From Haplodiscus bocki (Eukaryota), in assembly GCA_965655095.1 (NCBI GenBank), contig OZ296659.1, forward strand, positions 70,060,001 through 70,124,000: DNA of 64,000 bases, written 5' to 3'. The notes below the pieces were generated by a model. The model made no database searches, was not told the DNA's origin, and saw nothing but the letters and a program-made list of their open reading frames with translations. The position numbers and the translations under genes are program-made. Below, one piece after another: positions 3,871 through 61,700 of the stretch. How positions within the stretch are numbered: position 1 is the stretch's first letter; each line of letters opens with the position of its first letter.

Positions 3871-6249
3871 CTACTCGATGTAATCTGCTGGCGCTTCAAT
3901 TGATTTCCACGGGGAACAAACTCGCTTCACTAATTTAAATTCTATTTTGGTTGCACCCATGTTTACACTGCATTTTCTGAAACAAAATGAGCAAGTCCAA
4001 ATTAAATTTTTATTGGGAAAAAATAGCACACAAGAAATGCTTTTTTAACTAGCCAAAGAAGATAATTATCTTGACTTTTGTTTTAATGAAATCATTCGAA
4101 GATCAAAATGTTGATGTCTTTTCTGGTCTAAATATCTCTCAAGTGAAAAGTAATTCAGAGATGAGAAGTATTACTTACGATGTATCAATTGATGAAAAAA
4201 GGTTGAATTCCTTAGAAAAGCAGAGCTTCTCGGGACCGTAGACAATGTTTACGTTCAACTTGCGGCAGTTGGCGTTGAACGTACAAATTGAAGGGTCGGC
4301 AGTTTTGGCATAAATGTTGAGTGTCAGTAGTTTTGGGTTGTCGAAATGGTCGTATCTGCATTTGGCACGTTTTACACCCTTGGCCCACTTGTGCTTGCCG
4401 TAAGTACAGCCAGGCTGGTTGCGCATCTTCTCAAAATCAGTGTGCTTCTTTTGACAACAACCCCAATACTGAAGTCCTGCAACCAAATTCAAGAGTTTTC
4501 ATCTCAAATCAGTTTTTAGCCTTTAATATATTTAATAATTTGAAGTTTTAAAACATTCTTCTAAAATACATCGGAATTCTTTCTTTCAAGCTTCGGTACC
4601 TTTAGATACAGTTTAAAAACTATAGCAGCCAAAAATCGGCGCCGCCCTCTGTCGAATTTTGTGAATTTGGTCCAATTCAGAAGTATTGAGAACAAAACAC
4701 AACAATATAATAGATGGGCGATTTCCTTCAAAATCACTGGATCCAAAATTTAGGAGCAAAAACATCCATGAAAGCATTTGAAGAAATCCATGTCACTTTT
4801 AAAGCGCAGAAACTTTCACTGCGGACAGGATTACTTCCCTTCATCTGTAAATAAACTGCAGCGGGTCCGGAGCACAGAACATAACTCGAATATTGTGCAT
4901 TTTTGATTTGCTCATGGAATCTCAACTTCAATAACACTATGACTAGCTCACCTTCGTGAAAAACTGGAGGCATAGGGTGATGCAAACAATCTTCTATCAT
5001 TTCAAGTTCCTCTGAAACCTCAGCAACTGATTTTTTCAAAAGACATCCGAAGTTTTCACACTCCATTGTTTCAGCTGTTTGATCTGCCTCATTTGAATCA
5101 TTATTAGTAGCCAAAATTACGTTTGATTGCTTTGCAAGAGCTGATTTCAGAGATCCCAACACGTTGACAGGGAGTTTCACCATGGGTTCATTCGGATCCA
5201 CGTTATCATCAACATTATTGTTAACTGGTATTCTGGTGGGCTGTGGCATCGAAGATTTAATTAGTTCAGCTGCTAAAAAACAAAATGATTTTGGAACAGC
5301 GGTGTTTGACTATTTTGTAAAAACCAAGACTTCAGATTTATACGCGTCTTTTTAATTATCCCATTCCTGTCAACGTCCATTCTATGCAAAAGCCCTAACT
5401 TGAACGGCATTATACCAAATGCGAAAAGGAAAAGTTAAATTTTTTGCATTATTTGCACCCACCGGAAAAAGTCGAACCCATTTAGGACAAGCGAACATTA
5501 CTAACAACGACTCATGCCACTGATTTTGTAGCAACTTGGGAGTGAAAATCACTAAACTGCTTTGTCTTGGCACTCATAAATTCTTTCTAACCGATAACAC
5601 GAGAAACAAATAGACAGTCATTTCCGAAACCTACCTCCTAAAGTTGTATGATTACCAGGCTCAGACAACAATTGATCGTTGAAACTATCATAAAAAAACG
5701 TAGCCACCCAAGGCGGATAGGACTTCAGGAAATTTTTGATTTACGCGCTCTCACCACTGCTATAATGGTCCGTATGGTCCCTCCTGTACTCCCACTAAGC
5801 TTTGCTGCGTTTTCAAAAAAAATTGAAGTGTCGTACTAAAGTCCTTACTTATTTTGGAAGATGTCGCAAAATGTCGAAAATGCGTCAGAAAACAAAAACC
5901 GAGAAACATTCCGTCCTAAAACCAAATTACAGCTCGCTAATGAGCCCTCACCTTTTTGTGCTTCCATTTCACGCTGCTCATGCTCCTGTTCTTCTTTGGT
6001 TGGTGCCTGGACAACCGGTGCTGGTTTTTCAGGATTGTGAGGTCCCTGAATACATCCGGGGTAGGCTAAGAGAGTGGAAAAGTCACAAGAACTCTTTTTG
6101 CAGCACGGCCACCTTTTGATTCCGTCATGGAAGAAAGGCATTTTGGGGTGATAAGTACAAGCTTTTTCGTGGTTCTTACTCTCCACAAACTTCTTTTCCG
6201 GACATCCTGGGTTGTAACATGTGAGCAAAATTTCATCTTCCTGGCCCAT
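3871..6249 (-). CDS. CHORDC1: CHORD-domain Hsp90 co-chaperone (CHORDC1/morgana), 4 exons: complement(join(3871..3976,4179..4476,4952..5272,5952..6249)), about 340 aa
   Basis: CHORD1 (CYNPGC...CTYHP..PFFHDGIKRWPCC...GC..GPH), CHORD2 (CENFGC...CLHHPMPPVFHEG|LQYWGCC...GCTYGKH) and a CS domain (CRYDHF...LNIYAK...S|KCSVNMGATKIEFKLVK...W). All introns are GT-AG with consistent phases (1,1,2); 1023 nt in total. AATAAA at about 3810-3815 (minus). Confidence 0.93.
5690..5910. repeat. Dispersed repeat copy in CHORDC1 intron 1 (same family as 7700-8620)
   Basis: Motifs TTGATTTACGCGCTCTCA...CCTCCTG.ACTCCCAC..AGCTTT...TATTTTGGA.GA.GTCGCAAAA...AAACCGAG recur at about 7875, 8195-8370 and 8415-8620. Confidence 0.7.
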
Positions 6250-6855
6250 ATCGACTTCCCACGGAGTAGCAAGCAGCAGGAAAACCAGAACAAATCTGAA
6301 AGTAATGCCCAAGCTTGGTTAGGATGAAAAATTCGATTTCCATATTTCAAATATTCAGAAATAATTGACTCAGACGTTCAACTGTGATTATCAACATCCT
6401 TTATTGGGCTAATATCCGTCAACACAATATTTTCAAAAAGGACTGAGTTGATATTCCAACTTAAAACCAAAACTTTCCGTATCAATCCAATGACAATATC
6501 GGTTATTTTTTCAGGCTATAAAATGTCCAGTAAATGGACTATTTCAACTGGAAACATTTGAAACAACAACTGGCCCAGATTTTTTAACCTACCTCATGCT
6601 CCATTACTTTTCAATTTTTTTTTCGTATAAGGTTTTAATTTGTATCTTTGCAACGTCATCTTTGACACTTTCAACATTTAAACAGTCATTGATATGCATA
6701 AACACAAAGTGAGTCTGTACATTAATTAAATATATTCTACATAATTTTTCCCAGGATATTCCACAATTTGACATTTAGAAAGCAAACAAAAACGTGACCC
6801 ACTCAAGTCATCGCCAATTCAAAACATCGGGGCAAATAATACTGTTGGGTAAAAA

Positions 6856-9800
6856 TTATGACTTGAAGCATGTTTTCACAGCCCCGGAAGCAATTCCCCA
6901 CCAAAATGAACTGAAATAGGTCAGACCAGTAGCTCCTCCGGGAATATAGGACACGACATAATAAAGTAACGCACACACTTGGGCAGATCCGGCTACTGCA
7001 GTTAGAATTGTGCTTTCGAGACCCATTGCGAAATAGAGCGTCGCGACTAGGGTTGCAAAATATATTGCGGTGAAGAGGATTCGTTCTGGGGCGAAGAGGG
7101 TCTTGATGTGGTTCCAAGGGCCAAATAGAAATGAGAAGCTGAGCATGGTTAAGGCACTTCCGAAGGTAAAGAGAAGCACGAATTTACGCATTTTGAATAC
7201 CAGCATTGGCAGATACATGAATGCGCAAATGAAACACATGACACCGAGAAGTAATAGAATGACGAAACCTGCAAACCAACAAACACTTCACCTTCAATGT
7301 TACTCGTATTTCAATGGAATTTGGTTACCTTTGTTTAACAATCTGTTTTGATATTTTTAGGCACGATGATGATATTTTGAACATTGAAACATGTTGAGTT
7401 TCAGTTTTCAATTCAACACCTCGCCATTGTCTCTATCAAAACCAAATCTATCTAGAAATTGCAATTGCAATTCCAGAATTATGATAAAAACTCAATCTTT
7501 TTCACGACACGAACCTTCCTTTCAGCGCACACGATGTCGAAATTCAACTGTCTATTCCCAGATCAGACCATTACATGTTGCCAAATGCACATATTACAAA
7601 GAAAATGGTTTTGATGCGCGTCCTACGACTTCACTACTGTGAAGGTTACGAATTGAACTGCTTCTAACCTCGCCAGTCTAACTAGAACACCAAACTTCAA
7701 TTTAAAAACAACCACCCAGGGCAAATAGAACTTCAGAAAAGTTTTGGAATAACCAGAGAGTCTCTCCTGAACACTTAGTTCGTTTTCCCGCAATTTGGGA
7801 TAAACAAAATCAAAAGTTCCAGGGGTTTACACTTTTATAAGTATAATAACTAGAGAACAAAAAAATTCAAAATTTTGTTGATTTACGCGCTCTCAGCACT
7901 ACAGCTGTTTAAAAGCAATCTAATTAATCAGGATTCGAATTGAGCATCGGATGCCCGCAATCCAGCCGGTAGTCTTTGCGATGAACAAATTGCACAAAAA
8001 CAAAACAAGACGGAAGTAAAACATGGCCGCCCAAGGCTGATAGAACTTTTGGGATTTTTTTGGGATAACCATAGGGCCCCCTTGAACCTGATTCCGTTTT
8101 CTGAGAATTGGGATAAATGAAAGATGAATGAAAATTTCCCGAGGTTTACACTTTTATTAGTATATTGACAAGGAAACAAAAAAAATATTCGAAATATTTT
8201 GATTTGCACTATCTCACCGCTATTATGATGGTACCTCCTGAACTCCCACGCAGCTTTACCGCGCTTTGAAAGAAACTATTTTTTTAAAAGTCTCTCGAAA
8301 TTCTTTATTTTGGACGAGGTCGCAAAATTTCGTACAAAAAAGTCGGAAAAAAAACAAACCGAGTAACACTAAGTAATCGAAAAACAAAATTTTCGGAAGA
8401 ACTAAAAACTTGAATTTTTTCCCGACTCGCAGGCTCTAGCCGCTACTATGCTGGTCCGCAGGGTTCCTCTTTGTACCACCCCACCCACCCACCCCCACCC
8501 CGCTTTCCGGCGTTTTATGATTTTAAAAAAGTGTCAAATGTTGGACGAAACGCTTCATTTTGGATGGAGTGTCAAAAGGTACCAAAGGGGGTCAAAAAAA
8601 AGAAAAACCGAGTAGAACTATAACTACCTCATACAAATTGATATTTCCAAAGTACTAACATTTACACCTTCTCATCGCCACTTGTAACGCTACAATAAAT
8701 CAGACAATTGTTCAGTTATACAGAAAAATCATAAAGATTTTCACATTTCTTTTTGCTATTTCGCATTTTTGTCACAGTCTAGAGTAGTGCTATGATTGAT
8801 GATAACCAGTCTCATTGTACCTAGTCCAGTCTACACACATAGGAGAAACATACTTTAAATTTGTGAATGTCTTCTCACGACTGGCATTTGAATGAGCACT
8901 CGATGGTTGCAACCCAACCAGTCTCCGAGAAAAACACTCCGAGAAAAACACTCAAGAAGGACGGAAGTAAAAAATCGAATTTCAATTCACAACTGAAGAC
9001 ATTTAGCGTGTGAAGTTTGAAACGGGACATCTGTTTCTTCGCATACAGTTCTGTGGTACTGAAAGTCTATAAAGATGAATGTTCCTCCATTCCAGTAGTG
9101 ACCAAGTGCATGTGGAGCGCATTAAATGAAAAACCCTCAAAATATAGTATTTGCCCTCTAAAAGCTTCAAAAATTTCAATATTCTTAGTAGCTTTCAACT
9201 TGGCAACAAAATCCGATGATCAATATTCTGGAGTATGATAGATAATCGACCAGTTATGTGTACCCAAAATTTCACAATGGGAGTCGCGAAAAGAAAATTT
9301 GCTTCTAAATCAAAAACGCAGAAGCCTGTGATGGGCAACTACTTTAAACGCAAAAAATCTGCTATTTAGACATTCCAGCAAAAATTAAAACTGTACATGG
9401 AAGTTCACATGCAAGAAGTTGAAAGAGAAGTTCAGCGAGGCGTACTGCTTTACTCGATAGACACCGTGCAATTTGGTAAATGTCCACGTTCGAAAAAAAG
9501 CATCGTATCCACGTCCATGCCAATTGCTATCGTGAATGTAAAACAGAGGTGAAGCGGACTTCTGCAAAGCTGGCAACCCAAAAGGATTCAATAATTTGAC
9601 AACTTCAAATTGTTACAGCAGATTGCACTAAAGCCAAAAAAGGCTTCCCAAAAATAACAAAAACTTGTCAATAAATTTTAGTGAACCAAAATTTCGACGC
9701 AGAAACTTAAAAAATAGGGACTAAGAAGCTCAGTGTTAGGCTTGCCACAAGAATTTCTCACAGAAGCAAGAAAAACGTGCTCCTCGGTATCTCAAGTATT

Positions 9801-12800
9801 TGAAATCAAGATAACACCGTTTTCGAGTTCTTTCTCGAAAGAACTTCTACCGTAACAAGAAACCAGTTAGCAAGACACTGCAGCCACTTTAATATTCATT
9901 TTGAAAAATTGTCCTTATCATCCAGGATATAGCACTAAAGTTTTTGAAACAAATCTATAGCTCGAGCTACAGTCTTTCGTACAAAAACCTCATCAAAAAA
10001 TTTTTGACCGAAACCAGTAGTTAGTATGCGGCAAACTTAAGTCCTCTACTTACTCTACTGCAAAGATGACCCTTTTGAATTGAACTGGGATTCCTGGATA
10101 GGGTATGAACGTTAAAAAAACATCTCGAAAATAGGAAAAAATGCTCTATTAAAGTGTTTTTGCCTAAAAAAATCAATCTAAAAATTTTCTGACCTCAACC
10201 AAAAAACAATATGCGATACATGGTAGTACCTAGTTATGCCTTTTCATATTTAAACAATTTGAAGACCCAGTTGCCAGGATGAAAGAAGTCCTCGAAATAC
10301 CAAAGAAATATCTCCACTATCACTTAAGTTAGTTCTAAGTTTTTTCGCAAAACAAAACGAAAGTTTTTAGCAAAGGAACCAAAATTTAAAAGGTGCTGAA
10401 ATAGAGTCTCCATCTGGGCTGTGAAAAATCTAGATGAATTAGAGTCCTACATAAGATGAATACGACTTCTAATAAGGAAAATATGGTCAATGTAGCCAAA
10501 ATTAGCTCGAAATTCAATTTTTGTAGACAAAAAAAGCGATCGAAAAGGTCAGTTTCACCCAGAAAATAAGTGATTTAGTGGTATCTTGGGCGAACACACC
10601 CGACACTGAGAATTTTGAAAATTGAATTTTGATAGAATTTTGCAATTTGAACGGAACATTTCTACGACAAAAAAATTAGCCAGAAAATTTCGAAAGCACA
10701 AAGAACCACATGTTATTAATTAATGCGAGTAATATGCAGGGTTGGGTCATACCCATTAATTGTGTACAAATACTGCAATTATGTTGTGTAAATAATTGAG
10801 GGGAGGCAAAATAAATACTGCAATTATTGAGGGCACATTTTCTGATAATGTGGGCAAAATTTTCAATAATTGTAGGCTAAAGGAAAAATGGCAAAGTGAG
10901 AAAAATTTAGGGGAAATTGCACATTGAGAAGTTAATTTGGATTATGCACGAGCGGAATGTCGCGATATAGCACGGCAACCTATAAGGGCCGCGAAAGCTC
11001 AGTGAAATAATTGAAATTCGGCGTTGATGAAGAGCTTGTAACGTCTCGTACAGTGCAGCAAATTAACAGTCGAATTATTTCACGCATAGATTTCGTGTCC
11101 AATCAAATTGCAGGTTGAACTGGCCTGGTTTTCTCACTTTTACAAGTTGCAGAGTCGTGTTAAAATTCTTTTATGGAAAATGTCTAACAAAGACGCCCTT
11201 ATGAAATATTTTCGGCCTGGAAACGATCCAAATCAGCACGTTTGCTTGAAATGCAAGGACGAAAAGACTCAAGATCTGAGACATGGTTACACTATATTGA
11301 AAATTGGAAAAGCCTGTGTCAAAAACAGAAGAACTGATCGTGGCAATGCGACGTAATTGCAAAACTTCCGGGCTGATCTTTCACTCTGACCATTGACAAA
11401 AACAATGCCTTCAACTGGTAAACCGTGTACTAAGTCGACTGTAGTACCCATCTTGATGAAAAAATATTTATGAAACGCATAGATTATTTTCGGAGAAGTT
11501 TAAAAACAAACACAGACAACATCAGCAGTAAAATTTCGCAAAATTCCAATGACAAAACTATTAGCATAGTTTATAAAAAAAGGTAAGTTGTGCATTTTTC
11601 TCTCGCATTAATGTTGATCCGACATTCATTTGCTCTCCTTCTTGCAGAAAAGAGTGGGAAATAGGTTATCTCTAGAAGCTCCTAGCGACCAGCTAAGTCT
11701 TCTTGCTATCTGTTTGGTCAACCGTGGGTCTTCGATTCCGTCGAGTTGAGTTCGATTAGTGACCATCTTTGGGAGCCCAAGGGGTGGAACAATATTCTTC
11801 TTGATCAAATCTTTTAGTCAGCTGTTGAACATGACGTTTAATGTACTGAGAGGTATAGTTTAGTAGAGTGGTGACAGAATTGTTACTTTTTTCGAGACAA
11901 ATGAATTCTCCCGGTGTCAGCTGTATCACGGCTTGTTTGAAAATATTATTACCAGCAAATTTCATTACCTCCTTAACGATGCAAAAACTTGTATGCACCT
12001 TATTGGTTGGTCCCACCACCATTGGCTGACTTGTTGCCGATAGGTGTAGAGAAAGTTCGGGGACAGGGGTAGCTGTAAGTTTTGAAGTTTCATTTGGTCT
12101 GTTGATATTTTGCAGTATCTGGCTTATGAACCAACTGCAGTAAAAACAATGCATTTTTCCTCGAGCAGTGGTCGAAGTAGCGCTCAGAGTGATTGTGGTA
12201 ACAGCAAATAGTGCTGACAAAATGCGAGAATTCCACTACTTTAAGATAACCAACTATCTCTAAATTGATAACTTGGAAAAAATATCTTTCCATCAAGTCA
12301 CATATTGTCTTTTCACATAGGAGACAGCATTGGGGAGACTTCCAAGCTTGTGAAAAATATAAAGAGGAACGAGTAATTCTGAAATCCTGAATTCCAGTCC
12401 AAACTATGCAAACGTCTTATAACCCAAACATAGGTTTTTTAACGTCCAGGTGAATAAGTTGTTCATCGAAAGGAGGTCAAAAATAGAACTGTGTCCCGGA
12501 AATTTGTTCAGAAAAACGATATTTCTTTGATGATGAAGAAACAACTCTGTGTGTAAACTCTTTAACATAGGATTGCAACAACTCCGGGACTCCTTGAAAC
12601 AACGTCGATGCAAAAGTTTGAACTTCAGAGCGAAGAAGAATGGGTTGAAGTTTTGAGGGTGACCACTGAGTTTTTGCTCACAATTATCTAGAAAATGTTG
12701 TTTTTAGCTGACAACCGAGCCGGTAGACTTTGCTTTTGCAGAAGAACCAACTATTCTGACTTTCGATTTTTCGAGGAACTTGTTCTCAGTGAACATCAAA

Positions 12801-14959
12801 ATCAAGGAATGAGCGAATTTCTCTAAATAAGCCAATCACGAGGCGAAGACAGTTTCAGTCTGCATTTGCAAGAATAACCTCCAATAACAAAAGATCCCAG
12901 ATAAAAACGTACTTACAAGTCTCCATCGGATGTCATGAAGTTGTGTGAGTGAAATATAAAAGTTTCAAGAAAACCATAACTACCATAAGTTGAGAAATGG
13001 AAACTTTCGTTGTTGCAAGCGGAGCCGACTGGTTCCTGTTTCTGTTCGAGCTGCTGAAGTTTGTTTGATGTCAAAGTTATGTTTGTTGAGTTGCAAAGAT
13101 CATATAGAAGTAAAACAATTTCCATTGCTGTATTTTGATATCTGATGAGAAAAAAACTTAACATTCTAGTAACCATTGATCGTCATTAAACTGAATCTGG
13201 TATTTGACGGCTAAATAAGCGACCTGTAGTCGACTCGGTGCCTTATACTGAAAAACACGAGTGTAATTAACTCCATTGGCTATCAACCCGTGGTGATGGG
13301 CCAGTAATTGCGCAGCTTTTTGATTAACAGTAACCAGTCGGTACTGCTTGGAGGTTTTGTAAAGCCAGGTTTATCTTCATTTCCAAAATTTCAAATGAGC
13401 TTTTTGTCTACACAGTCCAAGAACACAGTATCTGAAAAATGTACCACGATCTTTTGTGTTTATTTTTGACAACATATTGCTTTAATTTCCAAGTTTCGTA
13501 ATTCGTCGATGGAACATTTAGCCTATATTCTCTATCCATGCGTTGCGAGCCAACTGACGTTTGACATTTTTCCAAGACAAATATCAAGTGCACCACATAT
13601 ACTTTTCACATCTCCTCGCACCGTACATATGTGGACAAACACAGACAGGCCCGTTCGCATCCACATCCACCAAGTAACGACTTGTCCTTCCGTGCAAACA
13701 ATAACCATCATAATTAACTGTGCATTCGCTTCCATGATAATACATTTTATCTGCGTCACCAGTATTGGCCTCACCGCAGCTGATGTGGCATAAGATAACA
13801 ATTGAACACAATACAGAAAGTTCAAGGAATGAAACGCAAAATCTAGCAATCACAGGCAACCGATTGATTGTTGACCATTTCCACTTTCAATTGAAAAAAA
13901 AATGAAATGTACCATAATCTTTTACCCTACACCGTAAGACCCAAATATTTGTCTCGAACTTGTATAACGTAAGGTATCCGCAGCCAAGATGTTATTTTTT
14001 TGTGATCCTAAGTAGGAGGTCCAGAGTTCGAGCCACCGAAAAACCGAGAATTTTTCAAAACCACGGCTTCACATTCGGGTGCGATCCGGTTTCAAGGATT
14101 CAAATTCGAGAATCCTCGTACCCGTTGTAAACGCCTCTAAAAATAATACTACTAATTCGAGTTTTCTACGACCGGAAAAAACATGTAAGGAAATAAGCTG
14201 GCTTTGACAGCTTCAAAAAGGAAATTTTCCGATGACAAAATGAAAAATTCCATTAAGTCGAATCGACATTTTGTACCCCCGATCTAATTCCTCGCTTGCA
14301 GAGAATCCTATATAAAATGGAGATCCGTATCTCGGCTTTCAAAAACTCCCACCATTTTTTCAACGTCATTGCCCAAAGACCGAAGCCAGCAAGTGAAATT
14401 ACCAGCCAATAAAAAGCGGTAAATAAAACTCAGGAATAGTGCTTCGGTTTTGGCGTCATGATGATCATGCCGAATGAAGAAAGCGAGTGAGTTCATCAAG
14501 TCGTCCGCTACATTCACTTTATCAAGTCGTCCGCCTGCTTCATTCATTCAGCGTGATACTAAAGACTTCGCAGCCAAAAAAAACGTGAGCGCATCTTTCA
14601 CATGTCTCGGACAGATTGAATGAAATCCGGCAGAAGGGTTTGCAAGTATAAGGTAACAACGAACCAGTTAGACGCTGTTTCCTACTCATTTCAGGCAGAC
14701 ATGCTATCTTGGGTTCTTCTTGCTTCTCAGCTCCTAGACCTGTCCAAGCGAGCCACCCAGATGACTTTGAGGCAGAGGAGGATGTTTGGGCTTCTTCGTC
14801 GAACGGGTTATCAGAGGACGCCTGGCTCAACTTTGAGTAGCCAGCAAAGGTCGGCAAATTGAGAGAGATGAAGCTTCCATTTGATGACCTGCTTCCAGGC
14901 AAATTTTTCTGCGAAGAGGACAAATAACTTTGCAAGTCAGATGCTATGTTTGAGGCCAT
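6856..14959 (-). CDS. SFT2D3: Got1/Sft2-family vesicle transport protein (SFT2D3/SFT2C-like), 2 exons: complement(join(6856..7268,14665..14959)), about 235 aa, 7.4-kb intron
   Basis: Exon 1 ends MSRKQRLTG (donor G|GTTCGT). It joins in phase 1 at TTTGCAG|GT to FVILLLLGVMCFICAFMYLPMLVFKMRKFVLLFTFGS...FLFGPWNHIK...QVCALLYYVVSYIPGGATGL, typical Sft2 transmembrane motifs. 708 nt in total. Confidence 0.9.
7700..8620. repeat. Dispersed non-coding repeat with internal duplicated subunits
   Basis: 7720-7910 resembles 8030-8220, and 8195-8370 resembles 8415-8620; a related copy lies at 5690-5910. Confidence 0.65.
8890..10030 (+). repeat. Highly diverged units of the ~175-bp repeat family
   Basis: TGAGCACTCGATGGTTGCAACCCAACCAGTCTCCGAG (about 8892) matches units at 29461 and 30357; 7945-7980 matches 29303-29335 almost exactly. 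Confidence 0.5.
10737..11370 (+). mobile_element. Probable hAT transposon 5' fragment (BED zinc-finger start)
   Basis: Begins CAGGGTTGGG, a hAT-like terminus. The ORF from about 11180, MSNKDALMKYF...HVCLKCKDEKTQDLRHGYTILK, resembles a BED finger and is truncated. No right end was found. Confidence 0.45.
13584..13878 (-). pseudogene. Intronless secreted EGF-like peptide ORF, apparently damaged
   Basis: A hydrophobic leader precedes ECTVNYDGYCLHGRTSRYLVDVDANGPVCVCPHMYGARRCEKY (EGF/TGF-alpha spacing, YCLHG, CxC, Y-G-x-x-R-C). The third Cys is AGT (Ser). The nearest ATG (13878) is 1 nt out of frame, so the called ORF starts at TTG. Confidence 0.7.
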
Positions 14960-15206
14960 TGTCTATGAAAGCAGCAAGGTCGTCTCAAAAATGTTCATAT
15001 AGATTCATTGATGATTGGGGTGACTGAAATGATTCATGTAAACCTGAAATTAAGAGCAATTGCACCCTCGGCTAATCTCAATTTGCATTTGAAACATCGA
15101 CTTCTTCACGATAACTCTAACATGCATTTAGGGTAAATGACAAAGATCGGTCCTTGAAAACCGTTTTACTGAAATTTGAAAATATTATTACAACTTAGAC
15201 GTGGGT

Positions 15207-23490: not shown

Positions 23491-24382
23491 AACATTCTTG
23501 CTTTCGCTCGAACGTAGCATGAAAAATTTAAATGGCCACCATGAAATGCAGAATTGAATTTGAAAGTTTTAGACGTTCCCAAATAATAGATTCAAAAAAA
23601 TGTCACAGGGTATAATATCGAACACCTTCGGCGTTAGTGTTAAAAAGCACGAAAACGTCCCACCGATAATTTTTTCCGGAAGCCCCTTCAAATTGTTAGT
23701 TAAGACCCCAGGTGTAAACATTTTCTTGTTAAGCCATTTTTGCAAACATATTAATTCGAGAAGACTAGCATCAAAAAGTATTGAGATACCACCGAAGAAC
23801 TAAAGGGTGGGAAGACAATATTTGGCTATCGGAGCTTTGAACTCTGTCAAAATTTTTCGATCATCCAAGGCGCCCACCTAAGAGTATTTCAAGCTTTACG
23901 GGTGGTGCCAACTTGCCCGTTCGTTTTTCGTTCTCAGACCGATACTAAATGTTTCGCATCATCCTCAAGGATGAAACTTGATGTGCAATCTGAAAGCAAG
24001 CTTTTGTTTTCAAGATTCGCATCAATTCCATGTCTTCTTCTTTGCGTGCCTTGTAACGGCAATTCCATGTAACGTTTTCCAATTGAAGATGACATAATGT
24101 TTTTAAGCAATTAATTAGCAATTCTATTCCTGAACATATTAGTAACTTCACATACAGGCTCAGAGAAGACCCATAAAAACTTGAAGTTACTCGAGATATT
24201 AATTTATAAACATTTGCAAAGTTAAAGAGATTCAACATAGACATTTACAAAATAGCTTTTTCAGTAAATATTTCAAAACATTTCTGTAGCTACAAAGCTA
24301 TTATCATTGATATCAACAAACCTTTCAGCAAATTGGTTTAAAACAATTCATGAACACAACACACATGTTAAAATTTACAAGC

Positions 24383-27022
24383 TTACGCTTCAAGAGATGG
24401 CGCTTGCAATTTGTTACTTCGCTCATTATTCTTTTTTGGACTTTTTTCAGATTTGCTGACGCAAATAAGGAACATTGGATAAACTTGATTGTGGTCAAAG
24501 ATTACCACTTGACTTGGTTCGCGATTATCGCCTACACAAGAATCGTACAATTCTTTCCTATTTTTGGGAGGGGGTCTTCTGTACGAGGAGTGCCCAACAC
24601 AGGATTCTCCACACAACACAAGCCCAACCATCAAACATATGTAAGCAATATCTTTGCCTTTCGCTGAAGTGCTGGCCAAATGCAGAGCATACTCGAACTC
24701 GGGGGTAAAGTAACTACCTTGGCCATAAACAGCTCCAAACATATCTCCGGAACGTCGAAAATCAAAGTTATTTCTCGCTATCTTGTCCGCATTTTTAGGA
24801 TGAGTTCCGTGAAACATCAAGGCTTCATTCAGTTTGGACTTGCCAAGTTTTTTCAACATATCTTGGCGTTTGACGCAATACAGTTTCCATAGACTGTGGT
24901 TTTCAATTCTGTAGATATTAAGGAAAGACGCTTTGGGCAGTTGGTAAAGCACGACATTGGCTATGACAGTATAATCTTCAGACATTCCAGGTTCCAGGAC
25001 TTGGTAACTGAATCCACTTTTTGTGATCCAGTTTTGAGGGATCATATTGTACTGGGCTTTTGCCAATTCTGACCTAACTTCATCATCCATTGCTGGTCGT
25101 CTACATAACATTTCAACTCGTCCATCCTTAAATTTAAAGACCATTAGTTTCGAATCAAAACCCTCAATTTTCAGCCCGGAGCGATAGCAGTTTTCCAAAG
25201 AAGTACTCCAATCACTAGCAATGTAAGGAGAACAAGTGTACGTCAAAGTCACTCTGCGTTTACAGTTATCTTTCCAAATATTCTGATTTTGATGTTCAAA
25301 TAGCTTCGATACAATCTGGGGAAAAACCGATGCTTTCGAAACCCAGCAGTCAGCTCCAACATTCGCCGCCGCTTCTTTGCTATACCAAGTCCAAAGATGG
25401 GAATCGTAACAGAGTCGTTGAACACGAACAGCGGGCATAGTCGAAACAATCATTCCCCTGTTGGTGAAGGTAAGTGGCCAGTCCAATTTATCCCACTTCA
25501 ATGTGGTCTGAGTAATATGCGGATCGGCAAACTGAACTTCTAATCCTCGAGCAGTATCAACTGGTAATAGAGACCATCTTGCATCCCCATATTTAATAGC
25601 AACCCACAAGTAATTCCCCTTGTACCCAAACATGGGGCATTTATCGTTTCTACATGGAAAAGTAGGATGATTCGCGCAGATAGTCGGCCACTGTGATACT
25701 AAGGTATTCTTTTTTCCTGTAGTTAGCTTTGGGCGGCGACAAACCCTTCGCACAGTTCCATGAATACTTTCTTGGAAATACGGGTATCCGTCGAAAACAG
25801 AACTTTTGAGAATAGTTAAAGTGTAACCTTTCTTACCACTTACATTAAATTCAATCACTTCAGTCGTATCGTCTTTCATTTTCTTATAAATAGTCTCGAT
25901 GTCAACGGAAGCGATGTTACTTTTAACACCATTCACTTGTGTACCATAAGGCACCCATTCGGCAGGACTTACATTATGAAGCCAATACCAAACCCATCTC
26001 TTATCTTCGCCTTCACTCAAACCACATCGATGCATTTGGGCACTCCGAACAGGCTCGCATACTGACTCCGCGAATATGTAGTTCAGAAAGGTCACATTAC
26101 ATAACACTTTCTCACCACGGATATCAGGCAGTTTCAAGTTTAGGTACTCGCATCGACCAGGGTCACTAAACGCAATTTCAAGTTGATCGTTGGCTTTGTC
26201 ATCCAAACAGAACCATTGGGTTTCGTCGTCAAACTTGTAAATCCAGTTGTACGACCTTTTAACCTTCGGATGCATTAGTTTACACTTGTTTCTCATGCCA
26301 CATTGGCTACCCACATATTTGGCACACACCTGCCAAAATGTGTTTTTCTCAACGTCATGTGGTTTCTCTATTCTGTTTCTTCCTCCTGTAGGAACGGGTG
26401 AGGCTGGTCTTTGCTTCAAAACAGGCACATCCAAAGCTTCGCCCAACTTAAGAGGCGAAAATGCTCGCGATAAATCCGAGAGATCTGTATCGTTTAACAG
26501 CTGGTTCGATAACTGCGATTTGAATCCCGACAAGTTCATGGAACGCAAACGAGCTCCAGAAGAATTGGTCGAATGCAGATACGATGACTGCGTTGAACAA
26601 GATGACATGCTTGACGAAGTGGAACTGTTGAAGTTACTTGAGCTAATTTTCTTGTAACTCGTAGAAGTCGTGGTTGTCTCCTCCAAAAACGTGACCGCAC
26701 TTCGTCTTCCACTAGTTTTCAAAGACTTTTTGAACAACATCAGACTCGAACTCTCCTTCTCCCAAAACTCCTCAGAAGTGAAAGTTTGGCTAGCCATGTG
26801 GAACTGACGCAATAGGTGCATCCAGTTTGGAGTGTAAGGAGTGAGTCCACAAGCCCTGATTAAAGTCACGTCTTTGTTAATAAGCTGGTGGTTCAAACTA
26901 CATCCCGCAACTTTGCATTGTCCACGGAGCACCAATCGCTTGCACATGTGAATGCCAGGACAGTTTTCATTAATGCAACGTCCATGGTTATAATCAATGC
27001 ACAGAGATGGGAACTTGATCAT
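24383..27022 (-). CDS. Intronless CCCH zinc finger / WWE / PARP protein (PARP12/ZAP/TIPARP-like mono-ADP-ribosyltransferase), 879 aa
   Basis: Two N-terminal CCCH-like fingers, a Ser-rich linker, a CCCH finger (CAKYVGSQCGMRNKCKLMH), tandem WWE modules ending RRVCRRP and LCRRP, and a PARP catalytic domain (LMFHGT, NNFDFR, YGQGSYF, LYDSCV...VIFDHNQVYP). Confidence 0.92.
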   Translation of the reverse strand: MIKFPSLCIDYNHGRCINENCPGIHMCKRLVLRGQCKVAGCSLNHQLINKDVTLIRACGLTPYTPNWMHLLRQFHMASQTFTSEEFWEKESSSLMLFKKSLKTSGRRSAVTFLEETTTTSTSYKKISSSNFNSSTSSSMSSCSTQSSYLHSTNSSGARLRSMNLSGFKSQLSNQLLNDTDLSDLSRAFSPLKLGEALDVPVLKQRPASPVPTGGRNRIEKPHDVEKNTFWQVCAKYVGSQCGMRNKCKLMHPKVKRSYNWIYKFDDETQWFCLDDKANDQLEIAFSDPGRCEYLNLKLPDIRGEKVLCNVTFLNYIFAESVCEPVRSAQMHRCGLSEGEDKRWVWYWLHNVSPAEWVPYGTQVNGVKSNIASVDIETIYKKMKDDTTEVIEFNVSGKKGYTLTILKSSVFDGYPYFQESIHGTVRRVCRRPKLTTGKKNTLVSQWPTICANHPTFPCRNDKCPMFGYKGNYLWVAIKYGDARWSLLPVDTARGLEVQFADPHITQTTLKWDKLDWPLTFTNRGMIVSTMPAVRVQRLCYDSHLWTWYSKEAAANVGADCWVSKASVFPQIVSKLFEHQNQNIWKDNCKRRVTLTYTCSPYIASDWSTSLENCYRSGLKIEGFDSKLMVFKFKDGRVEMLCRRPAMDDEVRSELAKAQYNMIPQNWITKSGFSYQVLEPGMSEDYTVIANVVLYQLPKASFLNIYRIENHSLWKLYCVKRQDMLKKLGKSKLNEALMFHGTHPKNADKIARNNFDFRRSGDMFGAVYGQGSYFTPEFEYALHLASTSAKGKDIAYICLMVGLVLCGESCVGHSSYRRPPPKNRKELYDSCVGDNREPSQVVIFDHNQVYPMFLICVSKSEKSPKKNNERSNKLQAPSLEA

Positions 27023-27638
27023 GGTTGTCCTCCGTCAAGTTTCAAGAATCTTCCAAAAATCAAAATAAAACAGCAACAAACAATCCAACACAAACACAAC
27101 TGAAATAGCCAACAAGATTGATTAGGAACAAGAGCATTGAATATTATCCCAATAAACTATCCTCTAACACTTGAAATTTCGACAAGATAAAAGGAGTCGC
27201 CAAATTGGCTCTTCTGAAAACAGGAAAATTTCCGGAAAAAGCCCAAAGTTGATAACTCTGCAAACAGACGCCAAAAAAATCGCTTTCGAAAATCGCCAAA
27301 AAACTAAGAAGAAACTAGAAAAAGTTAATGCTAGTTTGAAAAGAATGCAGCCATCATTGATCGAGCAAAACGTGTAGTAAGGAAAATACCCAGATTGCTT
27401 AAAAAGATAAGTTATGTGATCTCTTTTAGCTGAGTGAGAGCCGAAAACACGTTTAAATCGTCACCAAGCCCAGCTTTCGGATACAACACTACAAGAAGTA
27501 GAGTCATATGCTGGCTCTACCATTCGAGAGCTTTACGCGCCCGGGGTAAAAAAATTAATAATTTCATATCAATTTTTAAAACTATTCAAAATCACAACAG
27601 TGCAAGAAGCAAACCAACGTATGTTCATTCATAAGAAA

Positions 27639-52407
<24,769 letters not shown>

Positions 52408-52893
52408 GTTTTATCTCTGAAACTACAACAATCAGTGACAGCAAGATGAGAGAGTTCTCATGACAAAATTTCACATTTTTCATATCAGTGGCCCAAAAAG
52501 CAGCTGAATAAAATTTACTAAATTTTCGACGTCTATAGCAGTGCAGGAACTAACAAAGCAGATCAGAAGACGGTCCATTTTGAAACTTGAGCTTTTCTTT
52601 TGAAAAAAAAACGTTAGTTTGTAGTTTTGTACACGTAAGAGGACAATTGGACACCTGGGAGAAAAATAGCACGGAAAGCCTTTCTTACTATTACAAATTT
52701 GCGTAAAAATCCACTAACAACACAGGTCTGATTTGAGAGCTCCGTATTCTGTGTTTTTTAACAAGAAGAGCACATTTCAACATTCTTAGGCAATATGAAA
52801 CAATCGTTAGCTCGAAATCTATTAAATGTAAAATCTATAATTTAACAATCATGACCCAAATTGAAACAACTAGAAAAATTGCGTGCTGCCCTC

Positions 52894-54012
52894 TCATGCA
52901 AAGGAGGATACCATTGTATTACTTAGAGAGTCCTGGGGTATAGGTTCGTTATTCGCGGCATTCGCTTCTCTTTCCATTGTTTCCATTTCTTCGTCGCTAA
53001 GAACCGGGACTATGAGATTGTCACGACTCATCAAGCCGTATCTCAAAACATAAATTGTGAATCTTCGACATAATAAAGTGGCTGCCTCGAAATCGTCGAA
53101 AATAGTTCGATGATGGTAGTAAGCATGGGAGAATATTCGGTACACTCGTCTGCACACAGATCCCAGTTTTGCCACCGAAGATTCTTTTATGGTGACTCTG
53201 CTTGGGAAGTACTTGTTGCTGTTCAATAAACCTGCCGCTCCGTCAAGAGTGTGACGGGTGTAGTCAATAGCTGGACATTCTTTGGGTGTTTTATGCGCGG
53301 CGCACAGAAAAATCCACTGTTCTGTGCTTGTCATCTGGCTGCCTAAAACCACACAGAATTATTTCATCTTTGCTATGAGTCATTTTGAGTTGACCTTACT
53401 GTCTCAAGATGGGCAAAAGCACGATGTTTGAAAAATAAACAACTTTTCATATGCTCTAATCTCTATTCAGACTAGCATGTTAAGCATACAAGACTTACTG
53501 GGGGCCACAAGGAAGTACTCCGGTTTGTCCAAGAGATTTTGAAATCACTGAATAAATTCAGGAATGGGAAAAAATTTGTTTTAAAAGCATATTGAATTGA
53601 GTTGTTCTGAATTTATAGGATGCGTGCTCATTTCAAGCGAATCATTTTCAAGAAAACTTTTATTTTTCACTTCACTAATCACATAGAATTTCAACTTACA
53701 TGTTGAGGGGATACACTCTGATTGCAAGTAGACCGCTAAGGTATTCAACTGCATACAAAATTGTCTCAAATGCTCGTACTTCCACACCCCTTCGTCACAA
53801 TTTTCCGGAGGTGATAGTATTTGATCAATTTTTGAGAAATCAGAGCGAATGAGTTGCTGAATATACTGCTGAACAGCGAGCGCAGAATCCATTTGATCAT
53901 AGGCTTCATCGGGCCATGTGAACATTTCCTCCGCTTTGCAACCCATTCGATTTCTCCTGAGAACACGTGCTGCCATTGGTTCTTCAGAAGTCAAAGAATC
54001 GGTTTCCAACAT
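52894..54012 (-). CDS. MOB4: MOB-like protein phocein, 2 exons: complement(join(52894..53342,53700..54012)), about 253 aa
   Basis: RRNRMG.KA...WPDE...[13 protein letters not shown]...[14 protein letters not shown] | [37 protein letters not shown]...KYFPSRV; phase-1 GT-AG intron 53343-53699. An alternative in-frame ATG lies at 54027. Confidence 0.96.
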
Positions 54013-54399
54013 AGTCTGTAAGCACATCTCAGGATATTAATCATGGAAATTTTCAATTCAGATTAGTATGAAAATACATGCAGTGACAAATAGATTTTTT
54101 AATTCAAAGAAACGAGGGTGCGTCCTGCAGCCAGTATTCTTGGGGAGAAAACATTACCAAGCCCAAGATCAGGTATGGGGAGTTAGAAAAACAGGCGTCA
54201 CTAACCTGTAAGCTGCAGAGCCTCCTTACAGTGTCAATTACGGCCAAAAAAAAATCAAAAACATCAGCAAATAAAGGATGTATGCATTCAACTACATCGA
54301 TCATTTAGAAAATGAATGAAAAATCGCGATTGAAGGCTCGCCCCGATAAATCACGATGGCTTTCTCTCCTCAACTACAGCGGAAATTGATGCTTCAATA

Positions 54400-55450
54400 T
54401 TCAGTCGTCGAACTCAGCGGCAACCCCTCATTAAGTATAGAAGTGAGTGAGAGCAAAACTTAATTTCGTCAAGCAGCCCAGCGCATGAGTAGCCTTCCCG
54501 GGCTTTTTCGCTGATCTTCAGTGCAAGCCGAGCTAAGCATGGCGGCAAATGGGCCAGCACCTCCTTAATATGCAGAAAACATCGGACCGAAGGTGCTATT
54601 TTTAACATCCGGTATTTTGTTCATATTTCAACTTTTGCAATGATTCATAAGAATTGTACGCGTTTTTGATATCTTTCGCACAAAACTTTGCGAATGCATT
54701 GAACATTTTGACGTCGGAGTATGTTCTGCTAATCTGGACTCCGACACCGCTTGCCTACACACCTAGGCGAGCTTTACCTTCAGTACATGTTCATTTGTGA
54801 CCGAAGGGATGCCACTTCCAATGACTGGAGTTTTGGCTCTACGTCGATGTTATTGCGAACGCCTTTGATGACTTTACCAATGTAGAGCGTATCTCTCCAT
54901 ACCGCAAGCGGGTATAACCTTCTATCGCAATTTGCGGACATTGGACAACAGAGATAGCTTCTCAACGGGGCAAATTCTAGAATATGTTGTTCGGCTCCCA
55001 ATAGTAACTCAACGTGAGATCGACACAAAATTTGGAATTAGTCAGTTTGAAGAGTTATCGCCTCGGAGGCAAGACAGCGAGCCAGCTGGATGCTCCTGTC
55101 GGAAACTAGTGAAACAGTAATGTTCACTTCGTCCAGTTGGTTTGTTGAGGGCGCTGCTGTTCGCCTTTTGCAATTCCATTTTTCCTTTTTCCAGCTATTG
55201 TACTGTTTGATAATCCTTTGTTTAGGCATCATTGATGTCGTTATGATCTGAATGTCCTGTTTCCAACGTCGACAAGTCCCAGGTCATTGTTCGTGTGATT
55301 CGGCGCCAGGTTATTCAAGCCAACCTTGTTCAATGACAGGGAATGTTTGCTCCGTGAGTCTGAGTTCACCACGGCCAGCGGTGAAAAAGAGGAAGACGAG
55401 AAAGAACTCGACATACTAATGTGGTTTGTCTCACTCAGCTTCCTACACAC
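54400..55450 (-). mobile_element. Decayed CRE-clade non-LTR retrotransposon, C-terminal (restriction-like endonuclease) region
   Basis: The frame-broken series GASSWLAVLP, GYTRLRYGEIR (cf. GG...RHNEIRD), EPKLQSL, RLALKISEKAREGYS and MRGCR follows the order typical of CRE elements. Confidence 0.7.
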
Positions 55451-58749: not shown

Positions 58750-61700
58750 TTATTTTATAATTTAAAAAAAACAATGAAAAGCTTTCCTATTGTTACTGGA
58801 CTTCGACATTGTCAGGGGTAATTTCTCCCGCTCGCCTTCAGTGGAAACTTTTTCCCTACAGGTACACTGATAACCATTTCTTTTGATTCTAGAACTCTCT
58901 TGCTTTTCTTGATCAACTCCACCCTCAGACGTCAATATCAATTCAAGAAAGCCGTACTGTACACTTCGTTTGCATAGTGTTCTTCCAGCTTAATCTCAAA
59001 CATGTTCGGTTTGTCGGACAGTATGAGTACGCCAGGTGATGAGTTCCAGTCATTTTTTGTTGAAAAGAAAACGTTTGGTTTGGCTGGTTCGTAATTCTCC
59101 AGCATTTTGTTTGTATGGGTTTCTTCTAGTGTTTTTTTTGGTTTATGACAAAAATTTCATCGGTTGTTACTCGATCAATGTCTGTTTGACATCTTGAGTA
59201 TTTTTATCATGGAGTCACATCACCCTGTGTTCTCCAGAGTGAGTAACTCCAAAGCGTTAAGTCACTCAGTTTAGCTATCTTTGATCAGGGTTGTTATCAC
59301 CTCGGATGGTCGCCCTTGTACGTTATCAATACATAACTTGTCTTTTGTAGTAGGGCCTCCATGTCTTTTTTGCGTACTCCAGATGAGGCCTACCTATTGC
59401 TTTGTAAATGGTTCTCTTGATTTCTTTGGCAAAGCTTACAACTTCTTTTGTTTTCCGAGCAATATTCGCATAGGAATTGAAATAGTTCCTTCAATAATCA
59501 GGTTTTTTTTGTTTAAATGTTGCCAGTTGCACGATTGTCCCATTCTGCACGTTTCTTCTGAATAAAAATTCTTCATCGAATACTCGCCACAGACTGATCA
59601 ATACAAAAGTGAGAAGCACCTGTTAATATCAACAATATGAAGTCACCAAAGCTCCATTGTGATTGAACGAGAGTAAAAGATGCGGGAAACTTGTAACTAA
59701 AAACACGATTACGTCATAACCTTTCCATGTGAAGAAATAGAAAGTTTGAAGTTTAGTGTGGACTCCTAAGGAAGGCCTGGTGGGTTGATACTTTTGCACT
59801 CGTTATAGTAATCTCCATTTGAAGTCAGAAGATCAAGTGTTTGAGTTTTAGAGGTATCAAAACAATTTACCAAAGTAGAAAAAAATCCTAGCGATAGACG
59901 GGCGTCTTCTGGAATATTGCGATCATGCAATTGACTCCCCTGGTTTTCTAGAGTATGTAATGGCGGAACTGAAGTTTCGACTGGATTCTCAGTCTTTTTC
60001 TGAATTTCTATGTGCAGTTTTTGGTTTTATTGTATAAACTTAAGTTCTGCTGAAGTTCATAAATCGTTTTTAATGATTGAGTTTGTAACTCTTAGATAAC
60101 TGAGCTCCAAAAGATTTGCTGGGTACCAGATAGATAGTTTTCTAGATCACCTTGTAAGTTTTGCACCCTTGAGCTTTTGCAATGGTTCTGTAAGATCTTG
60201 CACCAGCAGCGTAGCTGGAAAGTTTTGATGTTGAGCTTTCTGTGTTTAAGTTCATGAAAAAGAGACAACGGATTTGTCAGAGTTGAATCCGCTGATGGTG
60301 GGTTCCCATAGTTTGTAGTTTTTTTCACTGTGACCCAATTTTTCGATCGGTTGAAAATGTGGTAGCTCATTCAGGTGTTGTACCTCGCCTCATATCTAAA
60401 TATCTAGCTTCTTTTGTACCAGTCTGTTGTGCGGAACACTATCGAAGGCATTTTTGAAATCACTGTCTGTAACGTCTACTCCATTGGCCTTAACGAAATA
60501 TGCGGCGCAATCATCTGGTCTTCACAAAATTTGTAGCATTACTGAGCGACCGACCAGAAATCTAGACTGTTGGTTTGATTTCATGTTGCTTTGATTACAA
60601 ACTCAATCACTTGTCTCCGAACCAATATTTTTCTACATTAGTTTGCAACAAACTATGGTCAAACTCAGAGCCTTTTGCTAATCGTTTCAGCGGTTTTGTT
60701 ATTTATTTCAACGTATCGCCGTCATGTTTCAAGACTTTTCCAATAGTCAGGTTTTCATCTCCTATTCGGAGATCTTTCAGAAATTTAGATCAGAGTTGGA
60801 ATTACTTCATTTCTTGTTTCGTAGAGGTTCCAAGAGAACAGGGTACCTGGCCCCACTGACTGACTTACAACCAGATTTTCAGGGACAATAAGGTTTATTT
60901 GTGCCATGAGTTTCACTTCAAATGAATGATAATTGCTGTTCTTGATTTTACAGGCTTTTCCAACACTGCAGATTACATTTGTAAAGATTGATCTGAAGGA
61001 AATCGGTAGAGTCCGCGTCTTCATTTTTTGTTGCTGGGCACCTGCCTGTGCTCAGACTCAATGCCGTCTCTGTTTCGGTCCACTTCACTTTTCTTTGGAT
61101 CTGATTGCAGAACTCCTTTGGTTTAGCCCAAAAATAGATGGAAACTTCCGATCAATCAATCAGAGGGTTGACTGTCTGAGCCTAGAACTGCAGGGTACGT
61201 TTCTTTCGAACTTCACACTTGATAGCGATATGATGCAAGACACTTTCGATACGCAGCTTCAAAGTTTAAAGACAGTGATTCAACTACATCAAGTGCCACA
61301 GCGTCCGTTGAGTTGCAGCTGTTGAACACTCTATCGCTGCATACGCTTCTAATGAAGGTTCGTTCTTTCTTGCCTTGAAGGAAAGCTTTATTGTTGTTCT
61401 GTTTGAGGAAAACTAACCGCATTAACATTTCAGTAGCACTGCAAATTGGTTTAAAGTTAAACAACTTTAAACCCGACACTACAAGCGTTAAAACTGTGCT
61501 TTTTTAAAAGAAAAGCTTAAGAGTTCGTATCGGGACCTGTAGCAGGTTGAGTGTTTTAAGTCTCTAGCAGGTCTCGGTTTAGCTTGATCTCGACCTTGCA
61601 ACGAAAAACACGGAAGGAGCAGCTAAACTTTGTGTTAGTCTTGTTTAGTAACCATAACAAAAAAAGACTGCAAAGCATACAGCTTCAGTGATTTCACAAA

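Follow-up and report, generated by a model that had tools for sequence, protein, structure and literature searches.

Operons whose transcripts are resolved by the addition of a spliced leader (SL) are known from several animal groups. In the single-leader operons of flatworms and tunicates (Macrostomum lignano, Schistosoma, Ciona and Oikopleura), unrelated housekeeping genes lie in the same orientation, trans-splicing of the downstream gene takes place immediately ahead of its ATG, and the first and downstream genes carry the same leader. In Ciona, the operon spacers are nearly zero. Macrostomum operons were called for genes less than 1 kb apart on the same strand with a trans-spliced downstream gene, the usual intercistronic length being about 100 nucleotides (nt) in both C. 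elegans and Macrostomum, and repeats are said to inflate the M. lignano spacers; the same group annotated Symsagittifera roscoffensis (PMC8629364). The SL2-type and hybrid operons of C. elegans have an upstream poly(A) signal followed by a downstream trans-splice acceptor, and in the chaetognath Paraspadella gotoi, a marine bilaterian in which SL trans-splicing is widespread, clusters of genes with broad expression were called operons at gaps below 250 bp (PMC12460157). As for acoels, the genome of S. roscoffensis was published with its SL sequence and a figure of 30.2% of trans-spliced genes, operons not being mentioned (PMC9911081), and no paper linking operons to acoels or Xenacoelomorpha was found in the literature searched. 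The locus presented here lies in 64,000 nt of eukaryotic DNA, with about 39% G+C, from Haplodiscus bocki (assembly GCA_965655095.1, contig OZ296659.1, positions 70,060,001 to 70,124,000 of the forward strand; hereafter the window), in which MOB4, PSMC2 and a PARP12-like gene follow each other head-to-tail on the minus strand. An earlier reading of this DNA, made from its letters alone (the sequence-only reading), had proposed that the three genes form a polycistronic unit resolved by SL trans-splicing.

The trio is a conserved head-to-tail cluster of SL trans-spliced genes, two of them on RNA evidence and the third one likely so. The RNA data stem from run X4, which comprises 82 Mb of contigs and whose sample differs from that of the genome-sized DNA runs X1-X3. 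None of the runs is recorded as RNA; the X4 contigs were aligned with positions 52150-54600, i.e. the MOB4/PSMC2 region, and proved to be RNA there; as such contigs drop rare molecules, a hole in their coverage proves nothing, and their depth is a poor measure of expression. At MOB4, a loose end at 54017 reads, once reverse-complemented, GTTGTGATAAACTTATTAAAT, then AG/ACTATG (a slash marks the junction), and the predicted acceptor GCTTACAG/ACT-ATG is used exactly, with the SL joined there. At PSMC2, the reverse-complemented contig 9 reads TTGTGATAAACTTATTAAA, then TAG/TTTCAGAGATAAAACATG, and crosses the junction unbroken; because the SL ends in TAG (...AAATAG), this junction is placed at 52423/52422. 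An SL joined upstream of the PSMC2 ATG had thus been rightly foreseen, although the site in use, TTGTAG/TTTCAGAGATAAAAC-ATG, lies 6 nt upstream of the predicted TTTCAG/. A related locus, L010, shares the PSMC2 exon start TTTCAGA, and contig 9 also joins exons 1 and 2 over the 18.6-kb intron that separates them.

The 3' part of the leader visible on the MOB4 and PSMC2 mRNAs (19-21 nt) is identical, as in flatworm and tunicate operons. The SL is absent from the local genome sequence at both genes, and AG stands directly before both junctions. An unspliced contig covering the MOB4 outron displays no cis-splicing upstream of the acceptor. The X4 RNA bears out SL trans-splicing for MOB4 and PSMC2, and for this pair it excludes the scenario of ordinary cis-spliced exons of the 5' untranslated region (UTR) with no leader in common.

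The genome is that of an acoel with the SL published for S. roscoffensis. The first 31 nt of that leader gave 1818 matches in the assembly at no more than three mismatches, vs. 0 for the reversed control, and the SL exon is 31 nt long, since the flanks of the sampled copies diverge directly after ...AAATAG in 8/8 cases. An SL RNA gene, for which the sequence-only reading had suggested searching the genome, is present as about 666 copies of the SL exon with a GT donor (666 exact 31-mers followed by GTR), the majority of them in a tandem array on C9. This array, at 72473736-72675410 and beyond, has a period of about 1.7-2.6 kb, and a second set of SL RNA genes, with the donor GTG and a spacing of about 10-20 kb, is found on C7. 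One SL retro-copy (L009, C1:37777729-37780759) runs on with TTTCAGAGATA and then diverges; these are the same 11 nt as those behind the SL on the PSMC2 mRNA, which may be a coincidence or an unrelated element.

MOB4 resembles the monocistronic outron-bearing genes to which most SL genes of C. elegans, M. lignano and S. roscoffensis belong: the SL, joined 3 nt ahead of its ATG, takes the place of an outron at least 500 nt long. The 433-nt contig 11 runs unbroken from 54420 to 53988, with a depth of 6 vs. 346 for the MOB4 mRNA (about 2%), and X4 coverage upstream of the gene reaches about 54527; with at least 500 nt of outron being transcribed, transcription starts well upstream of MOB4. The addition of the SL strips an in-frame upstream ATG at 54027, and the acceptor is kept both in L010 (TTCCAG/ATA-ATG) and in L011, another related locus (TTTTAG, 9 nt before the ATG).

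A cis-spliced 5' UTR exon for MOB4, suggested by the string CTTACAG/GTTAGT at about 54206 with its resemblance to an exon-donor pair, was considered and rejected, as this site lies inside a repeat resembling a short interspersed element (SINE) and the RNA consists of SL at the acceptor plus unspliced outron through the repeat. An upstream AIDA-like gene, which would have made MOB4 a downstream cistron, was likewise rejected, the weak Aida_C2 match at 60092-60370 being spurious and the real gene lying on C1; no conserved exon was seen within 7 kb upstream of MOB4. Protein look-ups did not yield mRNA contigs either: relatives of PARP and MOB4 gave genomic ENA contigs only, and P0005 proved to be the MOB4 mRNA, with a long 3' UTR, of another animal. 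The SINE-like repeat of the outron is possibly derived from a transfer RNA (tRNA) and occupies about 54130-54280, with an X1 DNA depth of 362 at 54200-54281 vs. about 8 in its surroundings; the expanded MOB4-PSMC2 gap of L011 (10880-11000) has a motif like it, GGGCTKGGTAATGTT. Joints and loose ends common to DNA run X1 and RNA run X4 are found over 54238-54527 (skips of 114-135 nt, plus a loose end at 54527 in either run), and these look like haplotype insertion/deletion differences upstream of MOB4, not splicing.

At the other end of MOB4, the 851-nt contig 10, from which the intron is removed (joint 53341 to 53699, GT..AG on the minus strand), ends at 52810, i.e. 84 nt past the stop codon, which gives a 3' UTR of 84 nt. 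Over some 115 nt behind the stop, conservation is about 90% relative to L010, which has AATATA at the place of the AATAGA hexamer preceding the contig end, and a conserved U/GU-rich block lies behind the 3' end. This succession of an upstream poly(A) signal and a downstream trans-splice acceptor is also that of the C. elegans SL2-type and hybrid operons, and the co-orientation of unrelated genes, with the downstream one trans-spliced just before its ATG, that of the flatworm and tunicate operons.

Polycistronic transcription is mechanistically plausible at this locus, given a functional, unpaired acceptor 386 nt behind a poly(A) site and active SL trans-splicing. RNA polymerase running past the MOB4 poly(A) site would meet the PSMC2 acceptor 386 nt further on, SL trans-splicing would cap and rescue the downstream RNA, and the same rescue would operate for PARP, about 460 nt behind the PSMC2 3' end; the trio would then be, at least partly, an SL-resolved operon, probably a 'hybrid' one in which internal initiation adds to the PSMC2 output. 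The PSMC2 contig crosses its SL junction without an unspliced counterpart, despite twice the depth of MOB4, whereas the MOB4 junction has one, and this asymmetry between precursors fits an uncapped and short-lived intercistronic RNA. Furthermore, the spacers are tiny for a repeat-rich genome of 1.5 Gb whose transposons filled the adjacent intron to 18.6 kb. An operon or hybrid operon is a reading that, in our judgement, falls only just short of probable. Of the polycistronic transcription resolved by SL that had been proposed, the trans-splicing at MOB4 and PSMC2 stands, whereas the single transcript stays a candidate, no X4 RNA contig spanning the MOB4-PSMC2 spacer.

Concerning the third gene, the acceptor-like site claimed upstream of PARP12-like, TATTTCAG/, is indeed present at 27100/27099, 77 nt before the ATG. 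Both this acceptor and about 25 nt at the start of the 5' UTR are conserved (TTTCAG/TTGTGTTTGTGTTGGATTGTTT in the window, TTTCAG/TTGTTTTGTGTTGTGATTGTTT in L010), while the remaining spacer is unalignable and the PARP proteins of the window and of L010/L019 are only 48-51% identical. Judging by this conservation, the PARP12-like mRNA likely receives the SL at 27100/27099, and the predicted junction would have ...ACTTATTAAATAG directly on TTGTGTTTGTG at 27099. The gene is expressed: X4 contains 82% of the sampled words of 24300-28300, a stretch of which the PARP open reading frame (ORF) makes up 66%, and such a share is impossible without most of the ORF being present in RNA. We consider it improbable that the acceptor is unused, or joined in cis to a non-coding exon further upstream that escaped recognition, so that the gene would go without SL and the trio would shrink to a pair at best. 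In the published annotation (PMC9911081), trans-splicing concerns no more than 30.2% of the genes, and the RNA junction data cover the MOB4/PSMC2 region alone, which leaves room for such an arrangement; no conserved upstream exon or donor is visible in the otherwise unalignable spacer, however, and an acceptor without an upstream donor in the transcript is given as the known requirement of SL trans-splicing in the passage of PMC8629364 that cites Conrad et al. (1993).

Also in favour of an operon, the order and orientation of MOB4 and PSMC2 are held in three lineages, i.e. the window, L010/L019 and L011/L012, and the step to PARP is held in the window, in L010/L019 and in L014, a divergent haplotype-level copy. 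PSMC2 exons were matched in both L010 and L011.

A number of observations weigh against an operon, and the first group concerns RNA and spacer length. No X4 RNA contig lies on the MOB4-PSMC2 spacer (52426-52809), 52478-52805 having zero depth, and once contig 9 itself is accounted for, no X4 depth is left upstream of 52425; the X4 word share of 0.82 over 24300-28300 suggests that the PSMC2-PARP spacer is mostly without RNA cover as well. At 386 and about 460 nt, the two spacers are within the limit of 1 kb used for M. lignano (PMC8629364), but they exceed the 250 bp that define chaetognath operons (PMC12460157) and are 2-4 times as long as is usual, or about four times the 100 nt typical of C. 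elegans; unlike in M. lignano, they go with no polycistronic RNA in the X4 contigs. No specialised second leader of the SL2 type was found, the first and the downstream gene having the same leader over the 19-21 nt visible. The contig depth of PSMC2 is 694 vs. 346 for MOB4, a poor measure as such, which fits the C. elegans hybrid operon, where read-through is combined with an internal promoter.

The same observations favour three independent units, in which each spacer of about 0.4-0.5 kb would contain a compact promoter and a short outron, the SL would only trim 5' ends and the close spacing would be that of a gene-dense, transposon-poor island. Spacers of 386 and about 460 nt leave room for promoters and exceed the typical operon length, a further pair of the window (SFT2 and CHORD) is also about 0.5 kb apart, PSMC2 stands above MOB4 in contig depth, no read-through contig was seen in X4, and the S. 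roscoffensis paper, with its 30.2% of trans-spliced genes, makes no mention of operons (PMC9911081). In addition, PARP12-like evolves fast, with 48-51% identity vs. 97-100% for its neighbours, suggesting a regulation unlike that of a proteasome subunit. PSMC2 and PARP could in this respect be monocistronic SL genes with short outrons, but in repeat-rich DNA such genes would not normally be found, twice running, as close as 0.4-0.5 kb to the poly(A) site of the gene before, and two consecutive same-strand gaps below 1 kb are unlikely by chance in 1.5 Gb of such DNA. Independent promoters also require that the MOB4 polymerase terminate within 386 nt in order to miss a functional acceptor. Also against them, unspliced RNA was seen in X4 for the capped MOB4 outron but not ahead of the PSMC2 acceptor. 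Taking both sides together, we regard three independent units as a serious candidate that remains somewhat below the level of the probable.

The second group of opposing observations concerns evolution. The MOB4-PSMC2 gap measures 364 nt in L010 and 3197 nt in L011, where it includes a tRNA-like SINE and a duplicated MOB4 fragment, and the PSMC2-PARP gap of L010 reaches 1448 nt with a repeat insertion of about 830 nt; this tolerance of kilobase insertions is again in line with independent promoters. Between the window and L014, the PSMC2-PARP spacer shows 90.3% identity with 38 gap columns, vs. 92-95% in introns, and, as it diverges as fast as introns or faster, its sequence is unconstrained and evolves neutrally. 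The proposed selection for short intercistronic spacers is not borne out: with gaps of 364-3197 nt and 1448 nt in relatives, inserted repeats and intron-like divergence, short length is not strictly maintained. Collinearity also takes in SFT2 and then CHORD, which come next on the same strand beyond gaps of 9.4 kb (window) and 1.8 kb (L019), so that the conserved order is not specific to the tight trio. Finally, footprinting of either spacer, with L010 and L011 as partners for the MOB4-PSMC2 one, gave no conserved block or shared 8-mer or longer word that was better than shuffled controls. Spacers without a conserved motif would speak against promoters inside them, but footprinting upstream of MOB4 likewise found nothing, and the lack of spacer motifs hence carries no weight for either model. 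As a separate observation, the duplicated MOB4 fragment inside the 3.2-kb gap of the L011/L012 species copies 80 nt of the C-terminal coding part of MOB4 at 84% identity (L011 11391-11463 vs. 10360-10439).

Tentatively, the locus may represent a genuine SL-resolved operon, the first in Xenacoelomorpha, with its order kept in at least three acoel lineages and with long (about 0.4-0.5 kb), insertion-tolerant spacers, a claim we place clearly on the possible side of probable. If it holds, polycistronic RNA would be processed in acoels with one leader, but across spacers far longer than those of nematodes, tunicates and chaetognaths. SL trans-splicing in S. roscoffensis being already published, the new element here is its gene-level proof at two loci. 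Acoels have a much-debated position near the base of Bilateria, and a verified operon would add a phylum to those in which operons tied to trans-splicing arose independently or were inherited from an ancestor, as well as show that such units survive in a transposon-rich genome of 1.5 Gb. The locus is a good test case, its two junctions, the poly(A) site of the upstream gene and three orthologous loci being mapped.

The features of the three genes and their spacers are collected below.

Table. Positions, within the window, of the MOB4, PSMC2 and PARP12-like genes and of their processing sites (CDS, coding sequence; aa, amino acids).
Feature	Position	Strand	Remarks
MOB4 outron	54016..54527	-	transcribed unspliced RNA upstream of the trans-splice site
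MOB4 trans-splice acceptor AG	54016..54017	-	SL joined 54016/54015, 3 nt before ATG
MOB4 mRNA body	52810..54015	-	exon 1 54015-53700, intron 53699-53343 (357 nt), exon 2 53342-52810
MOB4/phocein CDS	54012-53700 + 53342-52894	-	two coding exons; Pfam Mob1_phocein
MOB4 hexamer AATAGA, resembling a polyadenylation signal	52827-52822	-	12-17 nt upstream of contig end 52810
Spacer 1	52424..52809	-	386 nt, MOB4 poly(A) site to PSMC2 acceptor; single-copy
PSMC2 trans-splice acceptor AG (TTGTAG/)	52423..52424	-	SL joined 52423/52422, 15 nt before ATG
PSMC2 gene	27639..52422	-	exon 1 with 5' UTR 52422-52236
PSMC2/Rpt1 CDS	ATG 52407, stop end 27639	-	five coding exons, 436 aa
PSMC2 coding exons	52407-52236, 33635-33544, 33443-33204, 29086-28921, 28279-27639	-	
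PSMC2 3' UTR	27560..27638	-	about 80 nt; end placed by conservation
Spacer 2	27102..27559	-	about 460 nt, PSMC2 3' end (conservation-based) to PARP acceptor; single-copy
Predicted PARP acceptor AG (TATTTCAG/)	27100..27101	-	27100/27099, 77 nt before ATG
PARP12-like gene	24383..27099	-	5' UTR 27099-27023; single-exon CDS 27022-24383, 879 aa

The layout described by the sequence-only reading was accurate in several respects: the distances of 486 nt (MOB4 stop to PSMC2 ATG) and 616 nt (PSMC2 stop to PARP ATG) are exact on remeasuring, the gaps said to be free of repeats each have themselves as sole match in the 1.5-Gb assembly and are thus single-copy, and the 18.6 kb of mobile DNA in PSMC2 intron 1 correspond to 52235-33636, where remains of a MULE transposase/FLYWCH element and of a Pao/BEL retrotransposon are found, including MULE/FLYWCH and Pao peptidase ORFs. 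The counterpart of this intron in a related species is only about 200 nt long. A scan with Rfam across the window gave zero matches, and no run of N was encountered in the parts of the sequence that were read.

The PSMC2 protein contains the Pfam domains AAA, AAA_lid_3 and PRS7_OB, and its 3' UTR includes a 32-nt block identical in L010, TTGTGATTTTGAATAGTTTTAAAAATTGATAT, and is 97.5% identical to L014. The last PSMC2 exon (28279-27639) is interrupted in L010 (15079-16789) by two extra introns of about 420 and 640 nt, which amounts to a gain or loss of introns in closely related acoels. Within a PSMC2 intron of L010, positions 12117-12173 duplicate 57 nt of PSMC2 exon 1, with 84% identity to window 52390-52334.

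No further copy or retrocopy of the cluster was found in the chromosome-level assembly, while L014 (ERZ26859043, from the same sample as L001) is a second PSMC2-PARP copy of similar coverage, with introns 5-8% diverged and a PARP protein 96% identical; this points either to very high heterozygosity or to a collapsed duplicate. Beyond the trio, SFT2-like and CHORD-containing genes follow on the minus strand at 3871-14964 of the window and, in the same order and with similar spacing, at 14400-22300 of L019. About 0.5 kb separates the last SFT2 match from the CHORD exon 1 match, and the CHORD ATG (about 6247) stands behind a TTTCAG acceptor.

The PARP12-like ORF matches the Pfam PARP catalytic domain (E 2e-12) and, weakly and under the Pfam cut-off, WWE; its closest solved structure is the PARP12 catalytic domain (E 5e-26), and candidate CCCH-type zinc fingers were judged by eye only. 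In mono-ADP-ribosyltransferases of the PARP12 type, WWE and CCCH-type fingers stand ahead of a C-terminal PARP catalytic domain. Three relatives of the protein were found, at 45-96% identity, all in acoel-like assemblies. A 99-aa ORF at 23945-24244 has no Pfam match, and the 323 nt past the PARP stop (24060-24382) are 97% identical to L014, vs. 92-95% in introns, which, at the level of sequence comparison, suggests a long constrained PARP 3' UTR. The species of L010 possesses a second PARP12-like paralogue at another locus (L013, ERZ25074608), 45% identical and flanked by a RasGEF gene and DOLK, with a further same-strand AAA ATPase behind.

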